IMG/VR virus record: IMGVR_UViG_3300020188_000808
Location: 203,784 to 267,783 of that record
Reading direction: 5' to 3' (one strand)
DNA: 64,000 bases
Position numbers and translations under genes: made by a program. The notes under the pieces were generated by a model. It did not search any database and had not been told where the DNA came from. It saw only the letters and a program-made list of their open reading frames with translations. Every line of letters begins with the position of its first letter. The first letter of the stretch is position 1. Shown piece after piece: positions 3,004 to 53,042 of the stretch.

Positions 3004-3543
3004 TTATTCAGCTTGTGTACGATGAATTGTTAAATTACCTGCTATTACTATTCGCTCTTTGTCGTTCTTCTGTGGGGGTACTTCGTGTGTTACCCAACCT
3101 GGGAATACTGCTATAAGTCCGGGATTTGGAAATATAGCATTACCACTTGTTGGAAATACTAAAGGTGCATCATCTGGAGTTGCATCAACATAGTATACAA
3201 AACTCCAAATAGCAGGATGATGTGCATGTGGTTTACAGCTATCGCCTTTGGAATATACTGCACCCCAACAATCTGTTACTTCATACTTACCACCAACTAA
3301 ATGTTCAAGACCATTTTGTACAACATCAATAGCAAAGTTAATAATCTTTTTAAAGTCAGGATCTCTAAACATTGTCCATTCTGTCATATTTGCTTGAACA
3401 TTTGTTTTTCTAAATTGGCAATCCCCTCTAGCTCTAATTTTTTCAGCTAGTATTGGATTGAGTGTCTCGGCATCTTCATATACGTGAGTATAGATGTCAG
3501 CAGATTCTTTAAACTCTAATTTTTGCACGTTTGGTATGAACAT
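3004..3543 (-). CDS. Putative 2OG-Fe(II) oxygenase
   Basis: HAH...FPGWVTHEV...ERIVIAGN DSBH signature. Confidence 0.8.
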   Translation of the reverse strand: MFIPNVQKLEFKESADIYTHVYEDAETLNPILAEKIRARGDCQFRKTNVQANMTEWTMFRDPDFKKIINFAIDVVQNGLEHLVGGKYEVTDCWGAVYSKGDSCKPHAHHPAIWSFVYYVDATPDDAPLVFPTSGNAIFPNPGLIAVFPGWVTHEVPPQKNDKERIVIAGNLTIHRTQAE

Positions 3544-6276: not shown

Positions 6277-6500
6277 TTCTTTTTACGTCCTCTAAACCCT
6301 TGTGGCATATTTTGGTTAGTCATATAAGGTCTACTAAACCAAAGTTTAAACCAATCTTGATCACCTGGTTTTACACCCATTGCTTTTTCTTTTTTCTTTA
6401 GAGCTGTTGCAGTAATACTAGGATTTTCGTCAATCTTATACTCCGAATAACCTGAGAATTCATTAATCCCTGCTAGTCGTTGTAAAGTTTTAATATCCAT
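6273..6500 (-). CDS. Small hypothetical protein
   Basis: 75 aa, LQRLAGINE...VKPGDQDWFKLWF, tightly packed between its neighbours. Confidence 0.65.
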   Translation of the reverse strand: MDIKTLQRLAGINEFSGYSEYKIDENPSITATALKKKEKAMGVKPGDQDWFKLWFSRPYMTNQNMPQGFRGRKKK

Positions 6501-13994: not shown

Positions 13995-14023
13995 ATTATA
14001 TACTTATCTTAGGCTTTTGTCAA
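13995..14023 (-). promoter_or_regulatory. sigma70-type promoter of dnaJ-def-clpA
   Basis: TTGACA-17-TATAAT, 6 nt before the ATG. Confidence 0.85.
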
Positions 14024-14026
14024 GTT

Positions 14027-14368
14027 CTATTTGTCTGGATTCTTTTTAGATGTACCAGCATATAGTCCAAACCATGCCGCTCCTGCACCTACAACAATAC
14101 TAACTAATCCTGATTGCTCTAAGTTTGGATTTGGTAAATTCATGAACCATGTTGTAACATCATATAATAAGTAAATGTAAACTGACAAAAAGATTCTTGG
14201 AAAAATTCTCCAAGCATCTACAGCTCTTGCGAGAAAGATAAGATGCATATACGGATTCTTACCACTGTCAACTACATTAGTATCTACTTCTAATTCTAGT
14301 TTAACTTTTTTTGTATCTGTAGTTTCTACCTTTGTATCAGTTTCTACTTTTTTAGTTTCATTTTCCAT
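14027..14368 (-). CDS. 2-TM membrane protein, holin candidate
   Basis: Charged N-terminus, WRIFPR followed by two TM segments; lies in the lysis region. Confidence 0.5.
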   Translation of the reverse strand: MENETKKVETDTKVETTDTKKVKLELEVDTNVVDSGKNPYMHLIFLARAVDAWRIFPRIFLSVYIYLLYDVTTWFMNLPNPNLEQSGLVSIVVGAGAAWFGLYAGTSKKNPDK

Positions 14369-14792
14369 TTTTAATTTTCTCTATATTTTCTTTATTATCT
14401 TTAATTGCATCAGTTTGTGCTTTATCAATCATCTCTTGAAGACGTCTTCCTTTATCAATATCTGAATCTAAATGTAGATTTTTATTAATAACTTTTTCTA
14501 ACCTGTGAAACTTAACACGGTCATTTGGAATATATCTCCAAGTATAACCACGCTTACCGTAAACACCAAACACACTTTCACGCAATCCTATTTTAACTAT
14601 AATAGCATCATCGTCATCTAATATAATAGCATCACCCTCATTAAACGCAGGATTCATTTTAAACTTTAATCCTGACATTAGATTAGCCGCAAAATCTTTA
14701 AACCAGAAAGCAACAGAAATACTAATTAGTATTGCTATCCAAGGTGCTAACAAATCTGTTAAGCTCATTCCTAATTGATCAAATGCGTCCAT
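14358..14792 (-). CDS. Minimal MscS-like membrane protein
   Basis: TM helix then KDFAANLMSG...FNEGD.I.LD...IVKIGLR, matching MscS TM3 and beta domain. Probable ATG at 14792 with a GGAG SD. Confidence 0.6.
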   Translation of the reverse strand: MDAFDQLGMSLTDLLAPWIAILISISVAFWFKDFAANLMSGLKFKMNPAFNEGDAIILDDDDAIIVKIGLRESVFGVYGKRGYTWRYIPNDRVKFHRLEKVINKNLHLDSDIDKGRRLQEMIDKAQTDAIKDNKENIEKIKNGK

Positions 14793-14807
14793 CTTCGTCT
14801 CCACTAG

Positions 14808-14824: not shown

Positions 14825-14858
14825 GAAAGGTTGTCCAAAATAAATTAAACAACCTTTC
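14825..14858 (-). terminator. Intrinsic terminator-like hairpin
   Basis: 10-bp inverted repeat GAAAGGTTGT/ACAACCTTTC with T-runs on both sides, just after the stop at 14869. Confidence 0.7.
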
Positions 14859-14868
14859 TAGTTTTTTC

Positions 14869-16662
14869 TTAGTTTATAGCAGGTAACTTACTGTAGTTAA
14901 CTGTATAATACCCTGATGGGTGTGTATCAACTGCGTCTGCATACTTAGTTTCTAATAGCTCTTGTGCCATTACACCTGTTTGTACTGCATTATCCCACAC
15001 ATAATTATATGTGTAAGTGTTAATACCGTTGACTTTGCCTGCAAATTCAACGTTTTCTTTTAAGCGTGAGTCTGAAAAGAATTTCTTAACACTCTTCCAA
15101 CTCTTCTTAGCACCGTCAGCAACTACATTAGCCGCATCAGTAATAGCTTTTTCAGCACTCTTAATGGCATTGTTTGCTTGATTAATAGTATTGTTACATG
15201 CATTAATGGCGCTGTTACATGCATTAATAGTGCTGTTAGCCGCTTTAACAGCGTTATTAGCATTAAATACACTTGTAGTCCACTTACCTACTTCGTTACC
15301 CCAATGTGCAACTGCATTAGCCGCATCAGTCATTGCTTGACCAGTTTGGTTAATTGCATCTTCGGTAGCACTTACTGCCGAGTTACATGCATCTACAGTT
15401 TGTTTTGCAACTTTTTCGCCTTGTTTAGCAACTACTTGTGCTTGGTTTGCAACTTTCATTGCTTCTGCTTGTGCTTTATCAATTCCATCAGTTACATGGT
15501 TCAATGCTTCGTCCATTGTTCCACCTGCGTTTAGAATAGCGTTAGCACCGTCTACTAGTGGTCCAATATCAATGTCAACATTCACATCAACATCTAGTCC
15601 AACTAGCAAAGCCGCTTGTCCGTCAATACCAAAACTAATTGTATCATCTGTATATGTAGCGTGTGCAGAACCTTGAGCACCAATTTGGCCTCCAATACTT
15701 GCACCAGCACCACCGGATACTGTTGCTCCGCCTATGTGTGCAGAACCTTCAGCATCAACTCCAACGTTAGCACCTGCAATAGCACCGCCACCTACGTCAA
15801 CTCCGTCTTTACCAATACTTGCATGTCCACCTGCTTCTGCGTATGCTTCAGCGTGAGCACCTGCTGTACCTTCTGCACCTGCATCAACACTAATATCACC
15901 TACAGGTGTATCAATACCAATCTTAGCATCTGCTGATCCTGTTGCTGTTACATCTGCACTTGCACTTGCACCAACTGTAGCCGCGGCTTCAACACCGTCT
16001 TTGTCAACTGATCCACTTGCTTTTGCGTGTGCTTCTGCTTCTGCTTTTGCTTTAGCTTCTACGTCTGCACTTGCATCTGCATGTGCGTCTACGCCTGGAA
16101 CAATTTCTTGTTCAGCATGAGCTTCAGCACCTGCACTTGCACTTGCTTCTGCACTAGCATGAGCTTCAGCGCCTGCGGCAAATGAACTATCAGTTACTTC
16201 GTAACCTGCACTTGCTCCTGCTTCAGCACTTGCACTTGCATCAGCTTCGTAACTAGCACCTGCGTGTTCGTCGCCTACTGTTTCACCTACTGATGTTTCG
16301 ACACCTGCGGCAACTTGAATTGTGTACTGAGGTCTTGAAACATCTTGGACCATTGCTTCAGCTTGTGCAACTTGTGCCTGTGCCGCCGCATAATCGTCAT
16401 CTGCTTGTTTTTGTTTTGCAATAGCATCATCATGATCTTTAATTGCTTGATCATGTGCCGCTTCAGCCGCCTCTTGTTGCTGTTGTGCAGTCTTTTGTTC
16501 GCTTTGTGCGTTTGCTTTATTAGCTTTTGCTGTATCTGCTTCTTGTTGTGCAGATTTCTTTTGATTTTCTGCTTTAGCTTTTTCTGAATTTTTTTGATTT
16601 ATTTGATTTTGAGCATCACGCTTTTGGGCTTCGGCTTTGTTTTTATCGTCTTGTGCTGACAT
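14869..16662 (-). CDS. Ala-rich coiled-coil/beta-repeat protein with C-terminal intramolecular chaperone (peptidase S74)
   Basis: C-terminus FF|SDSRLKENV...GVMAQEL...VNYSKL. N- and C-terminal heptad regions flank AxAxAG repeats. Confidence 0.75.
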   Translation of the reverse strand: MSAQDDKNKAEAQKRDAQNQINQKNSEKAKAENQKKSAQQEADTAKANKANAQSEQKTAQQQQEAAEAAHDQAIKDHDDAIAKQKQADDDYAAAQAQVAQAEAMVQDVSRPQYTIQVAAGVETSVGETVGDEHAGASYEADASASAEAGASAGYEVTDSSFAAGAEAHASAEASASAGAEAHAEQEIVPGVDAHADASADVEAKAKAEAEAHAKASGSVDKDGVEAAATVGASASADVTATGSADAKIGIDTPVGDISVDAGAEGTAGAHAEAYAEAGGHASIGKDGVDVGGGAIAGANVGVDAEGSAHIGGATVSGGAGASIGGQIGAQGSAHATYTDDTISFGIDGQAALLVGLDVDVNVDIDIGPLVDGANAILNAGGTMDEALNHVTDGIDKAQAEAMKVANQAQVVAKQGEKVAKQTVDACNSAVSATEDAINQTGQAMTDAANAVAHWGNEVGKWTTSVFNANNAVKAANSTINACNSAINACNNTINQANNAIKSAEKAITDAANVVADGAKKSWKSVKKFFSDSRLKENVEFAGKVNGINTYTYNYVWDNAVQTGVMAQELLETKYADAVDTHPSGYYTVNYSKLPAIN

Positions 16663-16949
16663 TACTTTCTCCTTTTAGATTCTAAATGTTTAATACGTGT
16701 TTCTAACTCGTCAATCTTACGAGCTATATTTGGATTTACTTTCTTCCATGCATCAGGGTCTTGATTAAACCATGTCCAACCATATCTATCTCTAATGCTG
16801 TCTAAAAGTGTGTCCCATTTACCAAATACCCATAGTGCAATACGTGTATCTCTCATATATGCAATGAATAATGCTCCAAATATACTGCCGGCAATCGCGG
16901 TATATATCCATAGTCTATCACTAGCCATGCGTTCTATCATTTCGATCAT
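16662..16949 (-). CDS. Small single-TM membrane protein
   Basis: TM LWIYTAIAGSIFGALFIAYM, Trp-rich middle, coiled-coil tail. Confidence 0.7.
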   Translation of the reverse strand: MIEMIERMASDRLWIYTAIAGSIFGALFIAYMRDTRIALWVFGKWDTLLDSIRDRYGWTWFNQDPDAWKKVNPNIARKIDELETRIKHLESKRRK

Positions 16950-16982: not shown

Positions 16983-17142
16983 AGAAGGCACAAGCAATTT
17001 CGCCTTTGGGTTGTACCTCAATATTTTTATTATTTTTAGAATCTTTGGTAATATCAATGTCTGCACCAGGACGTACAGAACATGTACTTTTAGCACAAGA
17101 GGATAATAGGACAATCAGAGTCAACATTGCCCAAATACGCAT
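16981..17142 (-). CDS. 53-aa lipoprotein (not in the ORF track)
   Basis: MRIWAMLTLIVLLSSC-AKSTCSVRPGADIDITKDSKNNKNIEVQPKGEIACAF. Lipobox LSSC; start overlaps the o-spanin stop. Confidence 0.75.
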   Translation of the reverse strand: MRIWAMLTLIVLLSSCAKSTCSVRPGADIDITKDSKNNKNIEVQPKGEIACAF

Positions 17143-17531
17143 TACTTTTTAGTTTTGCTTTTGTCTGTAGACTCGTAATATTCTTTGTAAGATTTAATAA
17201 TTTCGTCTTGTTGAAGCATATATGCACGTATTTGTGCGAAGTTTTTACTTAGAGCTTCATAACCGTCATCTGTTAATCCAAATAATACAGGGTCAACACC
17301 GCCTGCTTTAAGTTTAGCAAATACTTCATCGGCATTGTCACTAGTAATGATAGTCCATTTGATTTCTTCTAGTTTTGGAGTTAACGGTTGTGGCAACGCA
17401 AGAGGTTCTCTTGGAACTTCTGTCTTAAAGACTTCTAGTTGCTTAACAGAACTACATCCACTAATAAGGAACGTAATTGGGATTAGCAATACTAGGACAC
17501 TCAGAGTTGATCTCAGATTTCTTAGTAGCAT
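17142..17531 (-). CDS. o-spanin (Rz1-like lipoprotein)
   Basis: Lipobox ISGC, Pro-rich segment, overlaps the 3' end of the i-spanin. Confidence 0.75.
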   Translation of the reverse strand: MLLRNLRSTLSVLVLLIPITFLISGCSSVKQLEVFKTEVPREPLALPQPLTPKLEEIKWTIITSDNADEVFAKLKAGGVDPVLFGLTDDGYEALSKNFAQIRAYMLQQDEIIKSYKEYYESTDKSKTKK

Positions 17532-17946
17532 TTTTCTCTTTCTCCGTTAATGGTGACCCCATAGCAATTTCTACACATCTCATTGCTTTTGTAGTCGCAC
17601 CGTTAATAACACGTTCAACTGATTTAGGACGTTCATCTGCAAGTTTGCCAATGTCACGTACTTCACCTTGAGCGTTAATTTTATTAAAGCGTTCGTCTAG
17701 TGCTTGGAATTCAGCGGCTAGTGTTTTATTTTGTTCAGTTAGTTTGGCTGATATAGCTTTTTGCGATTCAAAGTCAGCTTTTGCTTGTGCAATTACTTCT
17801 TTTTGATCAGCAACACTTTGTTCTAACTTTAAATTATTTGCTTCTGATGTAGCCAAGTCTGCTTTTATATTCTTAACATATACATAGCCACCGCCGGCAC
17901 CTGCCAACGCTACAACTATCATTGCTATTTTAATCGATGCAAACAT
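17461..17946 (-). CDS. i-spanin (Rz-like)
   Basis: N-terminal TM plus long coiled coil, next to the endolysin. Confidence 0.75.
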   Translation of the reverse strand: MFASIKIAMIVVALAGAGGGYVYVKNIKADLATSEANNLKLEQSVADQKEVIAQAKADFESQKAISAKLTEQNKTLAAEFQALDERFNKINAQGEVRDIGKLADERPKSVERVINGATTKAMRCVEIAMGSPLTEKEKNATKKSEINSECPSIANPNYVPY

Positions 17947-18070
17947 CTTTTACCTCATATCTATGTTGTTCACAGACGACAATTTCAATTGGCTTGTTGT
18001 CGCCGTCTGTAAACGTTTCAATTAGTTTACCTTCGTGTTGTCTACCGCAATTTTGGCAAACGTCACTCAT
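17930..18070 (-). CDS. 46-aa Cys/His protein (not in the ORF track)
   Basis: MSDVCQNCGRQHEGKLIETFTDGDNKPIEIVVCEQHRYEVKDVCID; ATGA overlap with the endolysin stop. Confidence 0.65.
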   Translation of the reverse strand: MSDVCQNCGRQHEGKLIETFTDGDNKPIEIVVCEQHRYEVKDVCID

Positions 18071-18576
18071 GCCATTGACAAAGCAAGTTCCGTTGTTTCG
18101 TCTACTCTACGTGTCCAACCTCGACCAAATGTTTCAAAGGTCTTTAATCTTTCGTAGTATCCTTGACGGTCTTCTTGGAACTCTTTAATAGTTTCTTTAA
18201 GTCCATGTGTGTCAACATATTCAGCTAATTTCTTTAGCGTGTTAGGACCAATTCCGCCATCAGCTACTGTACCAATCATAGTTTGTAAGTATTTTGCTGA
18301 ACGTCCTGTACCGGCATTAACACCAAAGTCAAATACACATAAGTCTAATCCACTTGGTAGTTCATCGCCTTTAACACGATCCCAATAATTCTTTTTGTAA
18401 ATTGGAGCAACATCTGCGACTGTTAAGTCTTTCATGTCTTTTGTTCCGCCCCATTCTTCATACACACGTTTTGTAACACCCAAGTTAGTTTCGCCACCTG
18501 GATCTTTAGGGTGATTTACATATCCGCCCTCGTGGTGTAGAATAGTTTCTAAACATTTTTGATAGTTTTCTTGCAT
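18067..18576 (-). CDS. Endolysin, glycoside hydrolase family 108 with PG-binding domain
   Basis: HEGGYVNHPKDPGGETNLG, FDFGVNAG, DGGIGPNT, FGRGWTRR. Confidence 0.92.
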   Translation of the reverse strand: MQENYQKCLETILHHEGGYVNHPKDPGGETNLGVTKRVYEEWGGTKDMKDLTVADVAPIYKKNYWDRVKGDELPSGLDLCVFDFGVNAGTGRSAKYLQTMIGTVADGGIGPNTLKKLAEYVDTHGLKETIKEFQEDRQGYYERLKTFETFGRGWTRRVDETTELALSMA

Positions 18577-24082: not shown

Positions 24083-24492
24083 GTTTGTGCCTCGCTTATT
24101 CGTTTTCTCAAATTAGATGTACTAAATGAGTGTTGTCTTTTATTATAATACAATTCTATGCCTTTGTCAACACAAATCTGCTTACCTGTAAACTCTTTAT
24201 CACGATATTCTTCGCCAATAAATCTACGATTCAATGTATATGTTAACAAAATATCTTTTAAATCTTGTTCTGTAGCATAGGGAATAATTTCATCGATATA
24301 CTTACAACCTTTTAATTGAACATATCGTTCGAACACACTTTGTATAGGTTTATTCTTTTCTGGTCTATCAATAGTTGGATCTGTTTGTAATCCAACAATC
24401 AAATAGTTGCAATTCTCACTTGCTTCTTTTAGCATAGCAACATGTCCACTATGGAACAAATCAAAACTGCTAAATGTTATTCCTACTGTCAT
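24079..24492 (-). CDS. Glycerol-3-phosphate cytidylyltransferase-like (TagD family)
   Basis: Start MTVGITFSSFDLFHSGH at 24492; RQHSFSTS. Confidence 0.85.
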   Translation of the reverse strand: MTVGITFSSFDLFHSGHVAMLKEASENCNYLIVGLQTDPTIDRPEKNKPIQSVFERYVQLKGCKYIDEIIPYATEQDLKDILLTYTLNRRFIGEEYRDKEFTGKQICVDKGIELYYNKRQHSFSTSNLRKRISEAQT

Positions 24493-25096
24493 AGTTAACT
24501 TGCTCCTTTTTAAATATAGGTAATATAATATTGCGTTGTCTTGCAAACGGAGTACTCTTACCACTAAACACGTATCCAGCAGTAACACGAGGACTTACAT
24601 CTTTAACAGGTATGCCTCTATGTAAGTAACGACTTGGAAAGACGATTAGACGTCCTTCTTTGTATTCCACTTCATCAATTTTTTTACCATCTTTCTCAGG
24701 ATCGCCATCCCAAAAATCCATACCAGTGTCACCGTGAATTAAATAAACCATAGTGTAAGCAGGTACATCATCTCCACTATCGACATGCAATCCACCTGTG
24801 TGTTCTTTTGTTGTAAGATTAATTTGTACTTGATTTAATTGTATGTCGCCAACATCATTGTCAATTAGATTCTTATGATGTTCAAAGGCGTGCCATACTG
24901 CTTTTAGTGTCCACGGAGTATTTTCTAACTCTGCTTGTGAAAACTGTTGACTAAAGATTTGATGTCCTTGATACTGACCTAAACCTCTATGTCCAAAACT
25001 AAGTGGATAATGTAATACTTGATTTATAGCTTGGTCATGTAACCATTGTGGAACTACATCATCAAGTATTACTATTTTATTGGGATCATAATTCAT
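24470..25096 (-). CDS. 2OG-Fe(II) oxygenase
   Basis: HVD...GRLIVFPSRYLHRG...PRVT. Confidence 0.8.
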   Translation of the reverse strand: MNYDPNKIVILDDVVPQWLHDQAINQVLHYPLSFGHRGLGQYQGHQIFSQQFSQAELENTPWTLKAVWHAFEHHKNLIDNDVGDIQLNQVQINLTTKEHTGGLHVDSGDDVPAYTMVYLIHGDTGMDFWDGDPEKDGKKIDEVEYKEGRLIVFPSRYLHRGIPVKDVSPRVTAGYVFSGKSTPFARQRNIILPIFKKEQVNYDSRNNI

Positions 25097-51793: not shown

Positions 51794-51822
51794 ATTATAT
51801 ATGAGTTTTGTTTACTTGTCAA
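51794..51822 (-). promoter_or_regulatory. sigma70-type promoter of queD
   Basis: TTGACA-17-TATAAT. Confidence 0.85.
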
Positions 51823-52423
51823 GTGTTTTGTGGTGTGTATTAAAACTCATTGTTATCCGTTTTTCAGTTGGATTTGGTTTTGTATAATGATACAACCAAC
51901 TTGGAAATAATATTAAGAATCCTGTCCTAACATCAAATTCCATTTCGTCTGCTGTGTATTCTGTTGCTTTAGCATGTATTTCAGACATCTTAGGACCAAG
52001 TATTGGACTTTTAAATATTAATGGAGAACTGTTTGGTTCAACAAATGGATAATATGCTCCACTGACAATACTTAGTTCGTGTCTGTGTAAATCTACACGA
52101 CCGTCAAGTTGTTGTGCATTTAACCAACTTTTTGATATTTCGGTATATTCTAAGCCTGCATGAAAACAATATTCATTGATACACATTTGTATATCGTCTT
52201 TAATTTTAAATCTGTCAAGCACGTTCATTTCTAATTGACTAGTAGTTTTTCCTTTACCAATCTCTTCAGGCCAATCGGTAACATTATTAGATTCAACGTA
52301 GTCTAATATTTCTTTATTGCTTGGATGGTCGTTTAAGTTATAAACTTGTACTAGTGTAGGAAAGATTGGATAGTCTGCTTTCCTAAACGGTCCATCAACT
52401 ATCTGTGCTTTCATGTGGGTCAA
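51812..52423 (-). CDS. 2OG-Fe(II) oxygenase
   Basis: HRH..SIVSGAYYP...FPSWLYH...KRITMSFN. Confidence 0.85.
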   Translation of the reverse strand: MTHMKAQIVDGPFRKADYPIFPTLVQVYNLNDHPSNKEILDYVESNNVTDWPEEIGKGKTTSQLEMNVLDRFKIKDDIQMCINEYCFHAGLEYTEISKSWLNAQQLDGRVDLHRHELSIVSGAYYPFVEPNSSPLIFKSPILGPKMSEIHAKATEYTADEMEFDVRTGFLILFPSWLYHYTKPNPTEKRITMSFNTHHKTLDK

Positions 52424-53042
52424 TCCTATAATCTCTTATTTTTGCATACGCGGCTCTGTCACTGTGTCGAATAGTATTAAAACTAACTGTGTATCGTTTT
52501 TCTGTTGTGTTTGACGGCACATGATGTCGCATCCAGCTTGGAAATAAACATAGCAATCCTGTTTTAGGATAACATTCTAATTCATATCTATTGTAGTCTG
52601 TTAGTCCTAGTGCTGAATAGTTCATAAAGTTTACTTGATTAGGGTTTTCAAAAACCAAAGGCGCACTACCTCCATCTACATAAGGATAGTATGCTCCGCT
52701 GACAATACTTCTTTCATGTCGATGTGCATCTACTTGTCCGTTCTGATATAACGAGTTAAACCAACTAGTTGATATTAGAGTGTAATCAACACCAAGATGT
52801 TGTGTATAAATGTCAACACATTCTTGTATAGTTTTCCAAAGGTTAGTTAGTCTTTTATCATTAAGGAACTGTTCATCTCCTGTGATGTAACTACTCTGTC
52901 CTTCGTGTACTAGTTTATGGTCACCAAATTTTGTATACGTGTTAATCATTTCCATTACAGTATTTTCATCAGGATGTCCTTCGATGTCAAATGTTGTAAC
53001 TAAACTTGGAAACGCATTATGGTGTGCAGGCTCTAACTTCAT
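52395..53042 (-). CDS. 2OG-Fe(II) oxygenase, paralogue of the adjacent gene
   Basis: HRH..SIVSGAYYP...FPSWMRH...KRYTVSFN. Confidence 0.85.
   Translation of the reverse strand: MKLEPAHHNAFPSLVTTFDIEGHPDENTVMEMINTYTKFGDHKLVHEGQSSYITGDEQFLNDKRLTNLWKTIQECVDIYTQHLGVDYTLISTSWFNSLYQNGQVDAHRHERSIVSGAYYPYVDGGSAPLVFENPNQVNFMNYSALGLTDYNRYELECYPKTGLLCLFPSWMRHHVPSNTTEKRYTVSFNTIRHSDRAAYAKIRDYRIDPHESTDS

Follow-up and report, generated by a model that had tools for sequence, protein, structure and literature searches.

What would a large protein that ends in a Peptidase_S74 domain be doing in the middle of a phage lysis cassette? The question is raised by the window analyzed here, a stretch of 64,000 nucleotides that forms the final 64 kb of the 267,783-bp IMG/VR record IMGVR_UViG_3300020188_000808, which belongs to a jumbo phage and is estimated to be about 75% complete. 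On the minus strand of the window lie two overlapping open reading frames (ORFs), one for a 597-amino-acid (aa) protein, P0001, and one for a 95-aa membrane protein, P0002 (Table 1). An earlier note on this DNA had delimited the same pair as a ‘two-gene cassette’, and had read P0001 as more like a pore former or fusogen than a receptor-binding fiber, with P0002 as its anchor or immunity factor. Based on sequence and predicted shape we favor, at a probability of roughly one in three, a reading in which P0001 would be a lysis-coupled, membrane- or lipid-binding trimer whose C-terminal tail is unmasked by self-cleavage. Judged by its sequence, P0001 is a real gene; its conservation is 81–100% across other viral contigs and ~40% in those more distant.

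The whole-protein AlphaFold model of P0001 was built from 18 sequences and has a mean predicted local distance difference test (pLDDT) score of 46, good for secondary structure only. It places a helix at residues 2–105, about ten long strands over residues 135–365, helices over 367–531 and a small, confident beta domain at 539–588. Together with the period-2 analysis and Pfam, the model bears out the layout described in the earlier note, namely an N-terminal coiled coil, alternating strands, a second helical stretch, the motif KKSWKSVKKFF and an S74 site. Also in keeping with that note, P0001 has no signal peptide, because its N-terminus is hydrophilic, and no fiber or attachment family was matched in Pfam or PHROG. 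Neither a transmembrane segment nor a lipobox was found in P0001.

A Pfam scan of P0001 recovered Peptidase_S74 only, at residues 530–578 (25.9 bits against a cut-off of 22; 30.3 bits and E 1.6e-7 in the genome scan), and this is the sole S74 domain in the 268-kb record. Residues S530 and K535 have the spacing of the Ser-x4-Lys dyad and are invariant in 11 S74 domains of the family. In MyRF the corresponding residues are S587 and K592, equivalent to S911 and K916 of endoNF, and the MyRF cut falls at P586|S587 (PMC8326128). Because that cut directly precedes the dyad serine, we predict that P0001 is cut at F529|S530, leaving a 529-aa product that ends in KKSWKSVKKFF. Like the endoNF tailspike and MyRF ICA domains, the P0001 domain stands at the C-terminus, behind a fibrous region, and has a conserved Tyr cluster (YTYNY). 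However, it is only 68 aa long and has none of the extended C-terminal helices reported for MyRF (PMC8326128); where the S74 of tailspikes is preceded by a triple beta-helix, that of P0001 comes after a coiled coil and a novel beta domain. Its gene, moreover, sits in a lysis cassette and not in a tail module, and some relatives have no S74 domain at all.

Natural variants bear directly on the predicted site. Three loci, L021–L023 (e.g. L021:7656-9251), encode a 531-aa protein that is 86% identical in the beta domain, lacks S74 and ends ...KKGWKSVKKAFKW. The converse is seen in L130 (IMGVR_UViG_3300047669_000517), where positions 6282–6461 hold a 59-aa ORF, M-T-SDVRLKEN..., which is what remains of S74, starting at the cleavage site and with an internal deletion. 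The flanks of this locus are 93% identical in DNA to those of the P0001-bearing L126, and only the 59-aa ORF is left between P0002 and the membrane protein TM148, the mature part being gone. Since L130 keeps the S74 piece while L021–L023 end at the site, the S74 and mature modules part naturally exactly at F529|S530, and this is therefore good indirect evidence that the cationic-aromatic end is the functional C-terminus. From S74 homology and these variants we infer that P0001 undergoes S74-driven trimerization and self-cleavage.

The end so exposed is distinctive. The last 14 residues of mature P0001 have a charge of +4 and a helical hydrophobic moment of 0.68, which ~0.1% of shuffles attain. 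Across the family, an aromatic residue stands within the last three positions in 71% of 146 distinct ends, compared with 26% of other genes in the same loci, and is usually accompanied by at least two Lys/Arg; besides ...KKSWKSVKKFF, such ends include ...KKLKFW, ...KKFFRW, ...PKNWF and ...GFFRGLFG. A cationic amphipathic C-terminus thus recurs family-wide, and in members with S74 it would be exposed by cleavage. C-terminal amphipathic membrane-targeting helices are familiar from MinD and FtsA, with Lys/Arg on one side and Phe, Trp or Leu on the other. The family tails are alike by resemblance only, with membrane binding predicted from sequence, and differ in that some members hide the motif behind a self-cleaving domain.

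Between the two helical regions lies the beta domain, in which period-2 amphipathy is strict across all 11 strands (mean Kyte–Doolittle hydropathy +2.08 on the apolar face and −1.75 on the polar face). The apolar face consists of 53% Ala, 18% Val and 11% Ile, and the polar face of Gly, Ser, Glu, Asp, Thr and His; over its 253 residues the domain has a net charge of −36 and only 6 aromatics. Modeled from a 98-sequence alignment (pLDDT 72.8 overall, 80–93 in the first 150 residues), the monomer is an open meander of antiparallel strands of 25–30 residues. No beta-helix, triple beta-helix or beta-spiral of the kind that forms tail-fiber and tailspike shafts is present in the monomer model, in agreement with the earlier note's expectation that P0001 would not be an ordinary beta-helix spike.

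Nearly all of the top 50 VIA-align matches are outer-membrane barrels (Z 8.4–12), with lipovitellin also present at Z 9.3. When its own viral clusters are set aside, the nearest shapes in the ESM Atlas are OMP_b-brl_3 and TonB-receptor barrels (template-modeling score 0.55–0.64, ~4 Å over 180–218 residues), and the weak top Foldseek matches in PDB are MACPF pore hairpins and the barrels of TonB-dependent receptors. A feature search of the ESM Atlas returned unnamed clusters only. Because the nearest shapes in VIA-align and the ESM Atlas are outer-membrane barrels, the modeled domain resembles about half the wall of a large membrane barrel. With the walls of such barrels (TonB-dependent/SusC transporters, autotransporter translocators) and with the hairpin stems of pore-forming toxins it shares an all-next-neighbor antiparallel meander and long strands of period-2 amphipathy. 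As a separate observation, the polar face (window 15559–16317, minus strand) carries repeated E-A-H-A motifs (9 His), and its last strand has Asp/Asn at every second position (LDVDVNVDID); this sequence pattern suggests that the domain may bind metal or divalent cations.

No Pfam, NCBIfam or PDB sequence match covers the beta domain, and PDB yielded no match, or low-complexity AQ/EA repeats only, when searched with the S74 region or with the profiles of S74 and of the beta domain. A profile search of 1.84 billion proteins returned 180 cluster representatives at E<=1e-3, and by its sequence the beta domain is a new, unannotated family. Its members vary widely in size: those of 250–300 aa consist of the beta domain and tail only, and others of 1000–1700 aa carry N-terminal arrays of B_lectin (x7), Laminin_G_3 (x5), PA14 or RTX, many of these large proteins having Sec signal peptides or double-glycine leaders. 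Among homologues of ~40% identity the beta domain and helical tail are common and both ends are variable; most have one to three PA14-like domains (PF07691) in place of the N-terminal helix of P0001, and some lack S74 and end ...NPKNWF. In four further members (P0019, P0024, P0029 and P0043, from the bacterial locus L011 and others) S74 is replaced by a C-terminal domain of ~110 aa that starts G-[RK]-[IV]-[IV]-C-T and had no family match in P0024 (Pfam, NCBIfam) or P0029 (Pfam). P0019 and P0024 open with a double-glycine leader of the classic type, and P0019 has an ABC transporter gene upstream. Searches of 50,697 phage records by megablast and tblastn, in which the BLAST low-complexity filter probably hides further relatives, gave nothing but an S74-only match in Roseobacter phage CRP-235 and the homologue in Flavobacterium phage immuto; immuto is the only cultured carrier found. 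There were also two full-length matches among 151 sampled genomes of one bacterial order.

In otherwise different phages, members of the family reside recurrently in lysis cassettes. In the viral locus L001 the gene order is spanin-like, DUF4337, small transmembrane protein, Lipase_3, member, GTA_holin-like, DnaJ and ClpA, and in L005 it is GH19, member, 2-oxoglutarate (2OG) oxygenase, Lipase_3 and DUF4337. In phage immuto the endolysin (gp191), holin (gp190) and a 67-aa transmembrane protein (gp189) are followed by the member gp188 (279 aa, ending ...KKAKFW) and a transmembrane/coiled-coil protein (gp187), and in L071 the member overlaps the 3′ end of the o-spanin gene. Across 37 non-redundant viral contexts, small transmembrane proteins account for 26 of 73 immediate neighbors (36% against a background of 14.6%; Fisher p 4e-5); within five genes of the member there is an endolysin in 8 contexts and some lysis-type gene in 14. 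The top annotated PHROG classes among 150 neighbors are 2OG oxygenase (7), endolysin (5), spanin (3+2) and esterase/lipase (2).

The window conforms to this pattern. A GH108 endolysin and overlapping i- and o-spanin genes confirm that the setting is a lysis region, as the earlier note had it; the minus-strand order is two virion structural genes, the endolysin, i-/o-spanin, a 53-aa lipobox ORF, P0002, P0001, TM148, TM113, DnaJ, peptide deformylase and ClpA. The o-spanin lipobox reads ISGC. TM148 has one transmembrane segment; TM113 (phrog_10198) shows two C-terminal hydrophobic segments by eye, none of which scored in the hydropathy scan. The predicted translational coupling of P0001 to P0002 is likewise upheld, the two ORFs overlapping by TAATG with AAGGAG 7 nucleotides 5′ of the P0001 start.

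Table 1. Features of the P0001 locus (window coordinates)
Feature	Position	Strand	Basis and remarks
P0001, 597-aa beta-domain/S74 protein	14869..16662	-	ORF; one copy in the 268-kb record
N-terminal long helix, Q/A/K/E-rich, coiled-coil-like (aa 1-107)	16342..16662	-	AlphaFold helix 2-105, alignment
Ala/Gly-rich amphipathic beta domain, unannotated family (aa 116-368)	15559..16317	-	Profile search, model, period-2 pattern
Long helical heptad-like stalk (aa 369-515)	15118..15558	-	Low-confidence AlphaFold helices 367-531; weak SMC/Rad50 and tape-measure coiled-coil matches
Cationic amphipathic tail DGAKKSWKSVKKFF, predicted mature C-terminus (aa 516-529)	15076..15117	-	Helical hydrophobic moment and charge (see text)
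Short Peptidase_S74 self-cleaving chaperone domain (aa 530-597)	14872..15075	-	Dyad S530/K535; predicted cut F529|S530
P0002, 95-aa single-pass membrane protein, core lysis-cassette gene	16662..16949	-	ORF, relatives
53-aa ORF with signal peptide and lipobox (LLSSC), between o-spanin and P0002	16981..17142	-	
Overlapping spanin genes	17142..17946	-	i-spanin 17461-17946, o-spanin 17142-17531; phrog_739, phrog_812, E ~1e-11
GH108 endolysin	18067..18576	-	PF05838 E 2.6e-31; phrog_315
148-aa (TM148) and 113-aa (TM113) membrane proteins, holin-type candidates	14027..14804	-	Directly after P0002 in relatives lacking P0001
Terminator-like hairpin	14825..14858	-	14-bp stem and T-rich tail, immediately 3′ of the P0001 ORF; kept in L130

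The coupling does not make the two genes a unit. P0002-like proteins are found at >506 IMG/VR loci, and the following counts refer to the best 80 of these. A beta-domain gene is present in 8 and absent from 72; in 19 the same cassette (i-spanin, o-spanin, P0002, [TM148], TM113, DnaJ) occurs with no beta-domain gene. In cassettes without P0001, P0002 is translationally coupled to the next gene instead, and beta-domain genes are for their part mostly found without a P0002 homologue. Being mostly found without a beta-domain gene, P0002 is a widespread core gene of the lysis cassette and does not qualify as a dedicated anchor or immunity factor, and the rare co-occurrence rules out a dedicated toxin–immunity or anchor pair of P0002 and P0001. 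P0001, on the sequence comparisons, is an optional, horizontally mobile cargo gene. What survives of the interpretation in the earlier note is therefore the non-spike shape, the residence in a lysis cassette and the amphipathic tail, to which the secretion signals and lectin or RTX heads of bacterial relatives add support; the membrane protein as a partner, the ‘two-gene cassette’ and a suggested similarity to WXG100-type proteins (no Pfam match at E<=0.1) do not.

Based on these observations, the favored course of events can be set out as follows. P0001, which has no signal peptide, would be synthesized late and in the cytoplasm; its C-terminal S74 domain would assemble three chains and then cut itself off between F529 and S530. 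The predicted product is a 529-aa rod of helix, amphipathic beta sheet and helix, whose new C-terminus, KKSWKSVKKFF, would form a cationic amphipathic helix of the type that anchors peripheral proteins to anionic membranes. Access to the envelope would come only after the holin opens the inner membrane. The tail, together with the apolar Ala/Val/Ile face of the half-barrel-like sheet, could then bind or insert into envelope lipid, most likely that of the outer membrane, and P0001 would help to break up or clear the envelope together with the spanins. Membrane binding by tail and sheet is what we infer from sequence and predicted shape; the target (by preference the host outer membrane after holin firing, alternatively a site outside the cell after lysis) and the benefit to the phage are speculative.

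Proteins with such a task are known from phage lysis cassettes. Spanins, the cationic phiKT gp28 peptide (‘disruptin’), mycobacteriophage LysB and corynephage LysZ are encoded beside holin and endolysin genes and are proposed to handle the envelope layer beyond the peptidoglycan (10.1101/515445, PMC5707550, 10.1101/2025.06.24.661397). P0001 is likewise encoded inside the lysis cassette but has no sequence relation to these proteins, coexists with spanins and is dispensable. Its cationic-amphipathic likeness to gp28, a small cationic peptide, is limited to the C-terminal tail, P0001 as a whole being large and acidic. It is not a LysB, because it has no esterase domain, and a role as a spanin was ruled out because it has neither a transmembrane segment nor a lipobox; genuine spanins are encoded upstream.

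Several observations weigh against the favored reading. The mostly Ala apolar face without an aromatic girdle, the mere 6 aromatics and the charge of −36 are unlike the lipid-facing surfaces of known barrels, and the Ala face might just as well serve to pack sheet against sheet in a soluble rod. Unlike outer-membrane barrels, the modeled domain is an open half-barrel of ~10 strands; it has no sequence homology to such barrels or to toxins (Pfam, NCBIfam, PDB), and the phage forms lack a signal peptide. The final hairpin, which is the most conserved part of the domain, is also the part modeled with the lowest confidence. A Foldseek search with the model gave nothing significant in PDB and none in BFVD either, and the VIA-align matches in PDB lie at a root-mean-square deviation of 15–19 Å. 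With respect to gene context, some members are found away from lysis genes, as in the T4-like cyanophage L012, where the member lies among metabolic genes, and lysis cassettes are general hot spots for cargo genes. Finally, P0001 is dispensable, with its mature part deleted in L130 and the gene missing from 19 related cassettes that do have spanins.

There is a different explanation, which we regard as unlikely: P0001 would play no part in the bursting of its own cell and would instead be an extracellular effector released by lysis, either a lectin-guided, bacteriocin-like membrane-active factor directed at neighboring cells or a coat that keeps envelope debris and vesicles from trapping progeny. 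Because bacterial relatives carry export signals (Sec or double-glycine) and B_lectin, Laminin_G_3, PA14 or RTX arrays, the beta domain would normally work outside the cytoplasm; most phage relatives have PA14-like heads, and the gene is optional cargo with its own terminator-like hairpin. Lambdoid prophages provide a precedent, in that toxin genes without export signals adjoin their lysis genes and the products are released by lysis. However, P0001 itself has a plain helix and no lectin head, and many phage members are reduced to the beta domain and tail. The benefit to a lytic phage would be unclear, and the tight embedding of the gene between spanin and holin-type genes, with an actual overlap in L071, suggests a role in lysis itself.

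A second explanation, in our view also doubtful, would have P0001 as a virion-associated fiber, whisker or decoration protein that just happens to be encoded next to lysis genes. Its beta domain would form a shaft with the Ala faces packed in the trimer, and the tail would dock on the particle. A helix-beta-helix-S74 layout is typical of phage fibers, and S74 is best known from tailspikes and fibers (Pfam description; PMC8326128). The endolysin gene is immediately preceded by two virion structural genes, an Ala-rich face suits sheet-sheet packing, the domain is very acidic, the lectin-like heads of relatives fit adhesion, and 2 of the 150 neighbors match the tail-fiber family phrog_3201. Against this, P0001 has no recognizable attachment domain and no PHROG or Pfam fiber match beyond weak coiled-coil ones, its gene lies between spanin and holin-type genes, and there was no tail or baseplate protein among the large neighbors tested. 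Members of 255–300 aa lack any stalk, the bacterial homologues are secreted proteins, and the gene has been lost in the close relative L130. A role as a regulator of lysis timing, with the mature trimer held on the cytoplasmic face of the inner membrane by its C-terminal helix and modulating the holin or P0002, is highly improbable: although P0001 is synthesized in the cytoplasm, is translationally coupled to P0002, adjoins holin-type genes and has a tail resembling membrane-targeting helices of the MinD/FtsA type, lectin-type heads and secreted bacterial homologues speak against a purely cytoplasmic function, for which the large beta domain would not be needed.

The neighborhoods of the family contain further associations. 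A Lipase_3 protein adjoins the member in three phage lineages (241 aa in L001, 9273–9998, and L005, 12045–12770; 324 aa in L035, 6533–7504); in L001 and L005, but not in L035, a DUF4337 membrane protein is encoded nearby. For phages of presumably Gram-negative hosts, a lipase within a lysis-type cluster is unusual. Neither partner was found in the 268-kb record at its ~75% completeness. A 2OG-FeII_Oxy_5 oxygenase of ~190 aa is encoded one or two genes downstream of the member in 8 of the 37 contexts, directly so in 6 (e.g. L005:11467-12045). We give this link less weight because the genome of this phage alone has ~8–10 2OG oxygenase genes, including those at window 3004–3543, 24470–25096 and 51812–53042; the adjacency may be due to chance or may reflect modification of Asp/Asn-Gly turns. 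Phage proteins of ~640 aa with Cohesin and a type IX secretion system sorting domain (Por_Secre_tail) are encoded near members in L039 (4932–6845), L043 (3971–5902) and L060 (6047–7975), and suggest Bacteroidota hosts for these phages.

Other parts of the cassette are variable as well. The start of the 53-aa lipobox ORF sits on the stop codon of the o-spanin gene, L125, L148 and L192 have homologues at this place, and other relatives have unrelated ORFs of 61–62 aa there; with the 53-aa product the lysis cassette may encode a second small lipoprotein. The endolysin is exchanged within the conserved cassette, being GH108 in the window and of the GH19 + PG_binding_1 type at the same position in the 81%-related L024 (5464–6312). 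Downstream, a perfect 12/12 sigma-70 consensus (TTGACA-17-TATAAT) is present at window 13995–14023 on the minus strand, just 5′ of the phage DnaJ gene, which heads a chaperone/protease cluster of DnaJ, deformylase and ClpA.

If the favored reading of P0001 as a lysis-coupled membrane binder holds, an S74 chaperone would serve as an activation switch outside any fiber, unmasking a membrane-binding end. More broadly, and tentatively, the beta domain may represent a new class of half-barrel modules that insert themselves or grip lipid. In phages it could act as a lysis-time outer-membrane disruptor or a lysis-released pore former, with the membrane-targeting C-terminus masked until S74 autoproteolysis in some versions, and in bacteria it could be the active part of secreted proteins with lectin or RTX heads. 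By one account, ~15% of phages of Gram-negative hosts have no recognizable spanins (10.1101/515445), and lysis-cassette factors such as LysZ are still emerging from gene context alone. The P0001 family, which recurs in the lysis cassettes of phages from the sea and from fresh water, among them a cultured Flavobacterium phage, is a candidate for a new envelope-active factor. Even if its role should prove to be structural, the family deserves a name, as it links phage genes to large secreted lectin/RTX proteins of bacteria.

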